DNA from: Zygnema circumcarinatum SAG 698-1b
Taxonomy: Eukaryota; Plantae; Zygnematophyceae
Direction: 5' to 3'
Length of the DNA: 64,000 nt
Assembly: GCA_037447605.1 (NCBI GenBank)
Contig: CM074807.1
Span: forward strand, 4,045,004 to 4,109,003
This document shows, piece by piece, positions 32,327 to 42,853 of this stretch. The notes below the pieces were generated by a model, which was not told the DNA's origin, ran no database searches, and saw only the letters and a program-made list of their open reading frames with translations. The translations under genes and the position numbers were made by a program. How positions within the stretch are numbered: position 1 is the first letter of the stretch; each line of letters opens with the position of its first letter.

Positions 32327-34525
32327 CTAGTAATTATAATAATAATCGAGTGGGAGTGATTGGTTGTGCAGAAACAGGTTCAGATGTACATTTTGTATAT
32401 AATTTTTATTTTGTCAAATATAGTTTTACCAATTCTGCTCACAGAACTAGAAAAAAGTTGTTCCATAAATGACAGCATTTAACTACTTGAGAAACCTACA
32501 GGAAGATGCGAACCTTTTCTTTCCACCTGCTGTAAGAATTGGGTTCGCTTTCTCGCCCTATTGAGCACCAATATGATGCTGCTAGTCACTAGAGCTGCAG
32601 GCTGTGAATGTTTTGTGGTCAATCAAAACCTTTTACAGAGAACTAAACTATTATCTGTGAGATAATAGAAAGCCAAAATGATGAAACAAACCGCAATTGA
32701 TCAGACCAACTGAGCCAGTATATTCCTCTTCAGCATCAACCTAATCAAGCAAGACGTAAGAAAGTCCCATTACAGTTTGCTTGAAGAACGAGCGTGTTTT
32801 TTTGTTTTGAAGTCGCTCTTACCAAAGCATATATTCACATCCTTTGTTCTCCGTTATTCTCTCTAGATTTTCTGCCATTTTACTGCCAACAGGTACCACC
32901 ATGGAAGCTATTTCAGTTCCTCGCTCCCAGTCAACATCACCCTCTCTCTTCGTCCAACCCTCTCCCCGCTCAGTATACGGAAAGGGCTCCAAGTCCTTTC
33001 GCGCAGTCGCTTTCGTGACGTGACATCCGGCTCCTCGTTTCTTTGGTCCGCCGCCGCCGGCGCGTCGCCGACGGACGTAGCAGCCCCATGCAGAAAAAAG
33101 AAAAAAAATGCAAAAATCCAAAATTTCTCGATGTGGGCCCGAAATAAACAGTGAATCCCCAAAAACGGAAGTTCCGCGTCGCCAAAAATTGCGCCCCCGT
33201 CAATTTCCGAGAGCATCTCCTGACGAAGATTTTGACGGGTACGAATGTGCGCGAACCCGCCGTCGTAATCACACGCATCGACGGTGAGGAGAGGGTGCAA
33301 GGAGGGCTCTGAAAAGACCGGCGGCCATGCAAGCTCCTTCAGGGGAAGGTGTCGGACGCAAAAGTCCCCAGAGGCTTTACATTTCAGAAGGGGTTTGAGG
33401 AGCATTATAAAAAGAGAGACCTTTGATTGACGGTGATGTTTCTGTTGCAGTGAATGCAGGAGGGAGGTGTGGTAGGGGAGAGAGGAGGGAGGGTGGAAGG
33501 GTGGAACAGCGGAGAGTAGAGGAGGAGGTGCTGAGAATAGGAGAGGCTAAGTGGAGAATGTTGGTTCAGGTGAATTCAAAATGAATTATATTCTTAAAAT
33601 GAGAGCATTAGTAAGCATATAAAAGGCTGGGGGAAAGCGACATTGAGATCAATACACGTATTTTTTGAGTTAAAAAGGTCTGAGATGGCGAAGTTTCTAC
33701 AGTTTATGCGAGGCAGATCTACCCAAGAAGTTTTACCCCATATCAATGAAGCTGAGAACTCTTCTACTGAACCCACTTCTGAAGTCGATCAGTCGGAGAA
33801 TCAGGAAGTGCAGCAACAGGGAGAAGGCAGGACAAATGTGGGAGCTGATGTTGACATAGAAGCACGTGAAGCCCCTATTCTCTTTGACGTTGACTTGAAC
33901 AGCACAGAGACGGGTACGTGACACTCTATTAACTCTATTAACTTCTCTCTATATCTCTCTCTCTTTCCCCCTCCCCCCCCCCCCCTCCCCTCTGTGTGTG
34001 AAAAAATGTCCACACACCAAAAGCTCATTTTTTCTTCTTTTTTTCCCCTTTTTTTTCAATTCCTGATCCTCATTTCCTTTGTGCAGCATCCCCCCCGAAC
34101 TCAGTCGAGTCCCGACTTGGTGATACTGTACCGACGGAATCAATCATGGAGCTGCGACCGATCTCAAGGAAGACCGGAATGGTGGTCGTTCACATGCCCA
34201 ATGAAGCAGCTGTGAATGAGTTTGAGGACAGTCCATTGAGCACGGAGAGACCCCGGGAGGGAGACGGCAGCAGGTCCTGGAGGGCGCGCCTTGGAGTGAC
34301 GGCGATGCAGTCGGATGCGTCACAGATAGACACAATTTCAACCATTGAAACGTTCTTGCCAAAGGTCAGCTGAGAGAAGAAGTAAACTACGCATGTGGAG
34401 GGAGAGTTGGAGGAAGGTTTGGTCGAATGAGGAGATACAGAATAGAGGAGGTGGCCGATGCGGGGAGGATGGGGTTGGGAGAGGGAGGGTGAGGGAGGGA
34501 GAGGGAGGGAGAGGGGGGGAGAGGG

Positions 34526-34535
34526 NNNNNNNNNN
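34526..34535. other. Assembly gap (10 N) in a G/A-rich intron tract; others at 41582-41591 and 63990-63999
   Basis: N runs are directly visible. Confidence 1.
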
Positions 34536-39800: not shown

Positions 39801-39920
39801 TCTCTCTCTCTCTCTCTCTCTCTCTCTCTCTCTCTCTCTCTCTCTCTCTCTCTCTCTCTCTCTCTCTCTCTCTCTCTCTCTCTCTCTCTCTCTTTCTCTC
39901 TCTCTCTCTCTCTCTCTCTC
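36861..39920. repeat. ~3 kb compound microsatellite (CT)n-(AT)n-(GGTT)n-(AT)n-(CT)n inside a GT2 intron
   Basis: (CT)n at 36861-37076, AT/GT/GGTT block at about 37077-37321, and (CT)n at about 37322-39920. It generates the spurious Leu-Ser ORFs of 970-1107 aa. Confidence 0.97.
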
Positions 39921-42853
39921 CCCCTCCTCTCCCCTTGGCTGTCTCTCTCTCCTCTCCCTCTCTCTCTCTCTTGCTCTCTCCTTCTCTCCCCTTTGCTATC
40001 TCTCTCTCTCTCCCTCTCTTGCTCTCCCTTTCTCTCCCCGTTGCTGTCTCCCTCTCTCTCCCTCTCTTGCTCTCCGCTCTCTCCCTTATGTATGTTCTCT
40101 CTCTCTCTCCTACTCCTCACAATGGGTTAGTCCACACTTCAAAATGTAGTCAAAAGTAAAGTTCTATCTCACTGACGATCTCCTCTCTCTCCCTCCCTCC
40201 TCCTCCACTGCCCTCGCTCCGCCTCTCAGATCGCCTTTCCTCCCTCATCCTCCACCTCTCCCCCATGCTTCCTCTCCCTTCGTCCTCTTCTTTGGCCAAT
40301 AGGAAGTTGCGACGTTCAACAGCAACGAGCAGCAATGGAAGTTTTGGTCCGAAGAATGTGTCAGTGAATTTGGTTGCGGCATGCGCTTGAGATAGAAGGT
40401 TCAGTCAATCGTTTTGCAACTCCTTGATGGCTTCAAAAAAGATGATTTCAAGTGATAAGAGTAGCGATACAAAAAATCTACATTTGGGCAGCTGAAATGC
40501 TCATTAACCCAATCAGTCAATGGTTCCGCCGCGGAATCATACCCAAAGTTTTCTGGAGGTATATGTGGACGAAGGAAATACCTATTCAGGCAAGGTGAGT
40601 CGAAGATACTTGGCCGAATTTGGCTGAGATGATATTGCTTGGATCTAGTCGGAGTTCTGATGACAAGTAAACGTTAGAGAATATTTTGAGTCTCCCCTTT
40701 CTTACCTCATTTTGGCCTGCGTTCTGCTTTTGGGTTGTGAACAGATTTACCCTTCTTGGGTATCTTGGAACTTATTTCGCCATTGCCTCTGCCCCTCTGG
40801 CGGTGCTCCTCAACTACTTTGCGTTCCACTACTTCCCAATGTATCGCTTTGAAACTACGCATAGCGTTGACATCACGGTGGTCACTTTCATTATTTTTTT
40901 CGGCATTGCTCCGCTCGGAACATGCATAACAAAGTGGGTCCAATTTCATGCTTTTTAACAATTGGGGCTGTCTTGATGATTTGAAAAGGATCTTTTATTT
41001 TGCTTTGATGATTTCACAGACCTCTGCGGCCCCCCTCCCTTCGGACCCTCTCTCATTCCACCCTCTTTCTCCTCTGTACAAACACTTATAAGAGCGTAGA
41101 GTAGACTCGCATTCAAGCAATACTTCAATCACACTCACAGAAAGTCTGCGATTGCTTCTTCCTTGCATTCGTAACCAACCGTAACCAACCATTCATCTCC
41201 AACCACTATTGCTCTTTCGCCTTCTGACAGGTATCGACTTGGGCTGCGGTGCAACCTTTTTGAGGAGTACCGCCCCTCCCTCATTTTCCTCATCTTCTTT
41301 AGTGGCCTCGGATGCCATCTGCTCATAGCCATCATGTGTCATCTCTTGTCCGTCAACATGACCTTCGGCATCACCAAGAAAGAAATCGAACACACAAACT
41401 TCTTCAAAGAGGTAATCCCTCCCTCTCCTCTCTCTCAACCCCCCCTCTCTCTCGCCTTCCTCTACTTCTTTCCTCTCCCTCTCTCTCTCCTCCTTTTCCT
41501 TCCTGTCCCACTCCCCCCTACCTCTTTCCCTCTCGATCCCACTCCCACTACTCCCCAACCCCCTCCTCCCCCCCCCCCCCCNNNNNNNNNNCCCCCCCCC
41601 CCCCCCCCCCCCCCCCCCCCCCCCGGTACCCCTCCTTTTCCCTCTTATTTTGAACTCCCATTTTCTTCGCCTGATCTCCAAAACTGTGGGACGTTTTGTA
41701 GGTAAAAAACACAGTGAGAGCATATTGGGGGCTCTACATTTGGGTCATTTTGGGCACAGCGATGATGGTGGGACTGTACTTCGTCCCGGAGCCCTATCGT
41801 ATTCGGGACTTCTTTGCACTGTTCCCGTTGGGGTGGCTTCTTTTTTTCCACTTTTTTGCTCCAATTCTCTTGAATCCTGTTCTCATGCTGTTCAAGTATT
41901 AGAGGGAAAATGGCTGGAACAAGCACTGAGGCAGCTTTATTAAGCATAGGAGGATTAGTTTAAGGATTATCAGAAGGGGTTTTCCAAAGCATACCTCGTG
42001 ACTCATAGGAGCACTTTGGAAAGGAGGATGTGGCATTGACCTCACGATGGCGATGATGCCATCAAATGTACATGGCCAAAAGCATCATGGGGAACCACGA
42101 GGAACTGGTCGCGAAAGGACCTGAGGACTACGGAAAGGCTTATCATAAATAAAGAGACAGCATTGTGACCATTCTATGCGCTTGGAAGGCTCTACTGGCG
42201 AATTACATGTGCAGCAGTTGGACATATCCACGTCATGTTTAGGATATTAGTGTGTCAGACGATGTTTCATGCGGCTTTCATAAAGGCAAGTGTCCTGATT
42301 CCGGAACCAGTAAAAGCTGTTTCAACTGAGATGACGCCATTGATGACCTGTGGGAATAAGCAAACCTCCGTCCAACCTTTTGAGCACACATTGTGATGGA
42401 GAAGCTCTTTAAACGATCGTGTTACCAGTAACTCGTTCTGAACCAGCACGACTACGTGTCTATCTGACAGCATAGTGTAGTCAGAGGAGGTTGAGGGGAA
42501 GAGAGGGTTAGAGAAGGGGGGGGGGAGGGGGAGTGAGAGGAAGGGGGGGGAAGGGAGTGAGAGAGAGAGAAAAAGTTACATGATATTTTAGCGAGAGAGA
42601 GGGATATGATTACAAAAACAAAAAACAAAAGTAGTCCACCAGAGGGCTTCCACATTCGAGGCATCACAACTCCACACAAGGAGGGCCTTTCGAAGGCATC
42701 ACGCGGGGCACTCGTTCCACACAACTTAGAGCCCCCCTCTCGAGGGGAAAATGAAGTTCTTGAAATAAGGTGCTACAAACAAGAGAGAGAGAGAGCAAAA
42801 AGACTGCGACTAACTGCTCTACACACCCATCTCTCTCACCTAACCCTACAAGT

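Follow-up and report, generated by a model that had tools for sequence, protein, structure and literature searches.

We analyzed a 64,000-nucleotide stretch of the genome of the streptophyte alga Zygnema circumcarinatum SAG 698-1b (GCA_037447605.1, contig CM074807.1, positions 4,045,004 to 4,109,003; hereafter the window), which carries a multi-exon gene for a family 2 glycosyltransferase (GT2) at 33685-41902 on the + strand. Judged by its sequence, this gene is a real, ordinary member of the known CslO/Tft1 family of GT2 enzymes, and its pseudogene look is mostly or wholly assembly noise, as demonstrated for 35964-36546 and inferred for about 40366-40490. A first-pass annotation made from the letters of the window had proposed a multi-exon membrane-protein gene with spliceosomal introns over this interval; we find 12 open exon-sized segments in the window reading frames, all on the + strand, with GT..AG ends and compatible phases at all boundaries outside two noisy stretches (exon-boundary check), and spliced RNA joints attest to the introns. 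The segments are listed below, where X11 and X19 are RNA contigs from public runs, P0152 is protein Chrsp50S06422 of Chlorokybus atmophyticus (835 aa), and P0004 (metagenomic) and P0151 are further relatives.

33685-33913, + strand: exon 1, with a putative ATG at 33685 and a poorly conserved N-terminus; open frame, GT donor at 33914, phase matching exon 2.
34087-34364, + strand: exon 2; its last 30 bases terminate a loose end of about 180 nt in RNA contig X11 and are joined there to 34896.
34896-35156, + strand: exon 3, first transmembrane helix region; acceptor ctgcag/GCACCA set by the X11 RNA joint; 31% identity to Chlorokybus.
35325-35477, + strand: exon 4, second transmembrane helix, with NSKYYS; 52% identity to Chlorokybus P0152, E 1e-11.
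35632-35702, + strand: exon 5, with PVYKES; 73% identity to P0004.
35926-36177, + strand: exon 6a, beginning with QYEEHGGQANVV and continuing into the region of NDDG and KFKKASNMN; free of noise up to 35964 and noisy beyond; 3' end approximate.
36369-36531, + strand: exon 6b, from the IDSD catalytic motif to IIQNLT; both ends approximate and wholly inside a noisy patch, placed by three-frame comparison with Chlorokybus.
36676-36813, + strand: exon 7, from DYWEN to GHN..LRWSA, the GT2 domain core; PF13632; 76% identity to Chlorokybus; RNA contigs X11 and X19 fit from 36673.
36814-40302, + strand: intron 7, 3.49 kb; spliced out in RNA contig X19, length from the assembly alone.
40303-40594, + strand: exon 8/9, from WSEECVSE to AEMLINPISQW; placed by homology, with its first 30 bases in X19 RNA.
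40745-40933, + strand: exon 10, with LGYLGTY and transmembrane helices; 46% identity to Chlorokybus, E 2e-14.
41231-41411, + strand: exon 11; 56% identity to P0151, colinear with Chlorokybus.
41702-41902, + strand: exon 12, last transmembrane helices, ending ...APILLNPVLMLFKY and stop TAG; 44-48% identity to the Chlorokybus and Bryopsis C-termini, aligned through their last residue.

A scripted concatenation that checked frame and stops yields 330 stop-free codons plus 2 bases for exons 1-5, and the frame of exons 10-12 closes at the TAG at 41900-41902. Across the approximately 1,650 nt of exons outside the noisy stretches there are zero stops or frameshifts, and conserved residues are kept. 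The gene, nuclear and intron-rich, is probably intact, with a protein of about 815 residues. First-guess starts for exon 3 (34875) and exon 7 (36631) were discarded when RNA joints shifted them to 34896 and 36676. All six motifs picked out in the first-pass annotation were recovered where it had placed them, on the + strand and inside open exon-sized segments:

35635-35652, + strand: motif PVYKES.
36427-36438, + strand: motif IDSD.
36778-36807, + strand: motif GHN..LRWSA.
40345-40368, + strand: motif WSEECVSE.
40755-40775, + strand: motif LGYLGTY.
41867-41878, + strand: motif LLNP.

Two spliced joints were seen in separate studies: 34364/34896 in X11 and 36813/40303, which spans the 3.5-kb repeat intron, in X19. 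The gene is therefore transcribed and spliced.

To place the protein, searches were run exon by exon and no joined protein was used, with the Chlorokybus relative serving as proxy for fold and tree. Exon 7 alone matches PF13632 (Glyco_trans_2_3) at 33.3 bits (E 5.6e-08), above the curated cut-off of 27, which bears out the Pfam check that the first-pass annotation had suggested. tblastn searches that used an 848-aa relative or the Chlorokybus protein as query matched colinearly along the locus, with E down to 5e-21. Such agreement well exceeds what coincidence would give. A profile-free exon 7 search of 1.84 billion representatives returned 205 matches, the best full-length one being P0004 at 76% identity. 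A word search with P0004 in turn returned first the Chlorokybus atmophyticus protein Chrsp50S06422 and proteins from Bryopsis, Coccomyxa and Elliptochloris, followed by many fungal "glycosyl transferase family group 2" proteins combining DUF7928 with PF13632 (Trichoderma, Pyrenophora, A. clavatus and others). Of the nine clean exons, seven score highest against green-algal proteins. The Chlorokybus protein leads the green-algal matches for five of the nine and all matches for four, with identities of 31-76%. These nine exons are colinear with Chrsp50S06422 to its last residue, including the family-specific C-terminal membrane part (LGYLGTY to the LNP end). The motifs invariant in the alignment of relatives are PVYKE, NDDG, KFKKASNMN, DSD, GHNxFLRW, SEDF and KYAYG; the window shows PVYKES, IDSD and GHN..LRWSA, while NDDG, the D of SED and KYAYG fall within noisy stretches.

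Neither PF03552 (Cellulose_synt) nor another Pfam cellulose-synthase domain matched the exons or the close relatives, and the best matches lie elsewhere, in agreement with the earlier view that this subfamily is not CesA/Csl. DUF7928 (PF25550) was also not matched on exon 3, the only N-terminal exon scanned. This domain is absent in Chlorokybus, P0004 and Bryopsis and present in the fungal proteins P0155 and P0205, with Trichoderma and A. clavatus as the species examined, suggesting that the gene is the algal and not the fungal form. Neither word searches nor the profile search returned a named land-plant member.

A maximum-likelihood tree of 44 relatives joins the green-algal proteins and the fungal clade, itself monophyletic (Shimodaira-Hasegawa-like approximate likelihood-ratio test, SH-aLRT, 100), in one group with SH-aLRT 96; just outside this group are stramenopile proteins, and the bacterial fusion proteins branch far away. 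This is a quick tree, rooted on the distant bacterial fusions and built without land plants, in which the closest relatives stand in for the window's own protein. The green-algal proteins P0152, P0153, P0163, P0212 and P0219, which include streptophyte and chlorophyte members, are not nested within the fungal clade. The tree is not obviously compatible with the recent fungus-to-streptophyte transfer proposed in the literature. The first-pass annotation had held that best matches or tree placement within CesA/Csl or bacterial GT2s would speak against its assignment; both instead point to green algae and then to the fungal DUF7928 and PF13632 clade.

That the locus is fungal or other foreign contaminant DNA is so improbable as to be negligible: while its closest named non-algal relatives are fungal, its closest relatives overall are green-algal, the fungal N-terminal DUF7928 gave no match on exon 3, the introns are microsatellite-rich like others of the genome, and the organism's DNA runs, drawn from three studies, contain the locus. 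The genes that flank it on the same contig also argue against contamination:

29637-31440 (narrower extent, about 30330-31290), + strand: upstream neighbor, a multi-exon protein kinase gene.
44254-48164 (narrower extent, 44254-45590), - strand: downstream neighbor, a CLPTM1-family gene.

The introns and flanks of the kinase gene are rich in CT repeats coding for (PL)n or (SL)n.

Two stretches of the window interrupt the otherwise open frame of the GT2 gene:

35964-36546, no strand assigned: noisy patch 1, with frameshifts and stops (TAG at 35966, TGA at 36046, others).
40366-40490, no strand assigned: noisy stretch 2, colinear with Chlorokybus in a three-frame view, DFDMALRLQSHGYIGRYITFTGPNFKEGLSLTVHDEITRFQKYAFG.

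The breakage implied by the first-pass annotation is thus present in the text of the window (frameshift and stops at 35966-36530, stop at 40390-40392); for patch 1, it is not present in the organism. Past QYEEHGGQANVV (35927-35964), the window meets a stop and then about 570 bases of garbled yet colinear NDDG/KFKKASNMN/DSD region, for which the three-frame view against Chlorokybus needs several frame changes and contains several stops. For a read check, contigs from four public runs of the same organism were compared over 34860-36830. A DNA contig from another study, X1, agrees with the window at 100% across 34860-35964 and 36546-36830, introns among them, whereas within the patch two segments that measure 127 and 178 letters in the window measure 140 and 193 in X1, and 11 substitutions (six of them window A against read G) and 10 small indels occur over 36092-36367. 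All six DNA runs (6/6, from three studies) contain the same 0.75 of sampled 31-letter words, the share to be expected if none of the short-read data sets includes patch 1, which makes up about 30% of the stretch. The spliced RNA contigs X11 and X19 also diverge from the window in the patch. X19 reads RFKKASNLNFGMNLSLEI, a clean family motif whose window version is garbled, KFKKASNLN being readable in the RNA contig and garbled in the window; the 264 nt of X19 from the motif N codon to V36676, the start of exon 7, make exactly 88 codons, and P0004 has 89 residues there. Both RNA contigs close exon 6b with ...TTCATTCAAAACTTGACTCAGCCCCTCCAACAG, coding for FIQNLTQPLQQ, and contig X7, which spans introns too and has no run type on record, gives GTGCTGCT as the true start of the intron, against TCTGCT in the window. 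Given identical flanks with a different interior in X1, the shared word fraction and the in-frame RNA motif, patch 1 is uncorrected assembly sequence, not mutation. Contigs of independent runs rule out a pseudogene reading of this patch, and the repair of the coding sequence advised in the first-pass annotation is needless for at least this larger lesion.

Noisy stretch 2 contains at least three frame changes and the TAG at 40390-40392, with 101 nt against 120 in relatives. From its sequence, it is very probably the same kind of artefact as patch 1, since it shows the same clustered small deletions, the approximately 1,650 other coding bases are free of lesions and the transcript is correctly spliced. 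The assembly has short islands of uncorrected sequence, with net base loss, A where the reads have G, and perfect flanks. Such islands imitate frameshifted pseudogenes, and other "broken genes" from the Zygnema genome may be alike and need a read check.

We also considered that the gene may be a decaying yet transcribed true pseudogene, in which at least the lesions at 40366-40490 are real and no active enzyme is made. This would fit the stop and the three or more frame changes found within about 125 nt of the window, in a stretch judged from window letters, and the near silence of the Zygnema CslO genes is compatible with relaxed selection in the family. However, the larger cluster of lesions of like character has been shown to be an artefact, several frame changes clustered in 125 nt with net base loss repeat the patch 1 pattern, and both the clean remainder of the exons, with its conserved residues, and the correct splicing of the transcript make decay improbable.

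Several observations nevertheless weigh against an intact and expressed gene. Stretch 2 reads VSE-F where relatives have VSEDF, leaving the D of the SED catalytic motif absent and a stop in place, and a real lesion may be present there. For exon 1, neither RNA nor homology support was obtained. One X11 contig follows the genome without a break from 35295 to 35735, through intron 4, whereas run X11 also has spliced contigs; the unbroken contig reflects either retention of intron 4 or carried-over DNA. Run types were coded or guessed, RNA status being deduced from the spliced joints, and the two Zygnema CslO genes are reported to be barely expressed (PMC11096116, supplementary file 8). A protein from the species itself was returned neither by exact look-up of the exon 3 open reading frame nor by word searches with P0004 and P0004:480-700, and the exon 7 word search gave just two fragments, both from other organisms. 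Weighing these points against the read check and the clean exons, we consider it likely that the protein is a membrane-embedded family 2 glycosyltransferase of the CslO/Tft1 group, probably intact, and that the frameshifts and stops of the window are assembly errors.

The clade was named CslO by Feng et al., 2024 (Nat Genet; preprint PMC9915684; supplementary note PMC11096116), who found it almost exclusively in streptophyte algae, with additional members in a moss, a spike moss and a fern (PMC11096116). The same work placed the Physcomitrium patens arabinoglucan synthase AGlcS (Pp3c12_24670) in CslO, grouped CslO with fungal Tft1 (PMC11096116) and proposed that algal CslO makes mixed-linkage glucan (MLG) or arabinoglucan (PMC9915684, PMC11096116). 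Like the CslO clade, the window gene is a streptophyte-algal PF13632 GT2 that stands apart from CesA/Csl and, judged by its relatives, probably groups with Tft1; its membership is deduced by way of the Chlorokybus relative and of the sister clade of fungi, and its link to moss AGlcS comes from the literature only. The Chlorokybus protein Chrsp50S06422 is the best full-length match, with the same motifs where the window is legible and a colinear alignment that begins at the first transmembrane helices and reaches the last residue; overall identity is only about 45-50%, and the N-terminal region is unrelated.

The fungal clade, with A. fumigatus Tft1 (AfTFT1), shares the domain, the motifs legible in the window and the predicted seven-helix layout and is the sister clade in the tree; it differs in its DUF7928 N-terminus, in identity (about 35-40%) and at the switch-motif position, where the window has IAPLGTCITKY (exon 10, ...GIAPLGTCITK), AfTFT1 has APYIALCIVRS and Metarhizium P0132 has AGPIALAIVRY. 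Orthologues of Tft1 were described in Trichoderma, Metarhizium and A. clavatus (PMC4344333). The link of the window gene to Tft1 appears good but indirect, as judged from a fungal clade that contains Trichoderma and Metarhizium proteins. A. clavatus P0205 was set aside as an uncertain Tft1 orthologue: its switch-motif position is unlike that of AfTFT1, and Metarhizium P0132 is closer.

A search of PDB sequences gave no useful similarity, the best match being a CesA at E 0.067. For the Chlorokybus core, an AlphaFold model that drew on 32 aligned relatives reaches a predicted local distance difference test (pLDDT) score of 91 and a predicted template modeling score (pTM) of 0.89; its GT-A domain is surrounded by membrane helices, two of them N-terminal and about five C-terminal. 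Foldseek on this model returned the bacterial cellulose synthase BcsA as the best match (E 5e-13), together with plant CesAs, a cyclic glucan synthase, hyaluronan synthases, barley CslF6 (8dqk) and chitin synthases. In this proxy model the family has the same overall fold as BcsA, plant CesA, CslF6 and the hyaluronan and chitin synthases, and presumably the same processive synthase-plus-channel mechanism; unlike BcsA, CesA and CslF6, it is without PilZ and without plant-specific regions, and has KYAYG in place of QxxRW.

By analogy with these fold relatives, the enzyme likely acts as a processive synthase that also forms its own export channel. The cytosolic GT-A domain would take a uridine diphosphate (UDP)-sugar, with NDDG, DSD, SED and the KYAYG helix that replaces QxxRW as putative catalytic motifs; sugars would be added one by one onto a growing beta-linked chain, which may exit through a channel formed by the approximately seven transmembrane helices of the enzyme.

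The product, by analogy with characterized members, is probably a beta-glucan-type wall polymer, MLG or arabinoglucan-like. AfTFT1 expressed in Komagataella phaffii makes MLG (bioRxiv 10.64898/2026.09.17.752320). Against a specific assignment, the fungal and moss enzymes of the CslO/Tft1 family make different polymers. It is possible, though not the outcome we favor, that the enzyme is intact and makes another chain, such as a cellulose-like beta-1,4-glucan, a beta-1,3-glucan or a heteropolymer. The product specificity of GT2 synthases is not readable from sequence, a single family already yields fungal MLG and moss arabinoglucan, the switch-motif position differs from that of AfTFT1, and the fold resembles cellulose, hyaluronan and chitin synthases to a similar degree. 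Conversely, the sole two characterized members both make a 1,4-linked glucan with a different linkage or sugar interrupting it at position 3, and reviews report MLG-like epitopes in charophyte algae, both of which favor the MLG or arabinoglucan-like product. A broader proposal, that the CslO enzyme makes a wall polymer chemically undescribed in streptophyte algae (for instance MLG or arabinoglucan-like) and that the green-algal members are old residents and not the result of recent fungal transfer, is tentative and, taken as a whole, rather unlikely.

The reading given in the first-pass annotation, a candidate synthase of an MLG or arabinoglucan-like wall polymer, is right but already known, as the CslO family and this hypothesis for streptophyte algae are published. 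The biological gain is therefore small: publications already cover the family, its occurrence in streptophyte algae but not in seed plants, and the products proposed for it. What the locus offers is a transcribed, probably intact copy that is a usable candidate for the expression test already successful with the fungal enzyme.

The assembly also contains two gaps within introns of the gene:

34526-34535, no strand assigned: gap 1, a run of N inside intron 2 (34365-34895), in a GGGAGAGGGA-type GA-rich repeat at 34477-34644.
41582-41591, no strand assigned: gap 2, a run of N inside intron 11 (41412-41701), in a poly-C run.

RNA contig X11 joins the end of exon 2 (34364) straight to 34896, so gap 1 is intronic, both of its sides belong to one transcript and no codon is affected. 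Exons 11 and 12 keep the frame and align colinearly with Chlorokybus (NFFKE/VKNTV against NFFQEVKVTV); from this homology-based colinearity alone, gap 2 appears to be intronic. Intron 7 is nearly all dinucleotide repeat, with (CT)112, (TA)40, (TGGT)17, (TA)43 and (TC)~1399 over 36853-40109; short-read contigs end at its edges. Intron 5 contains a minisatellite with about six copies of a 13-base unit, CTGGTTGAATGAA, at 35831-35912.

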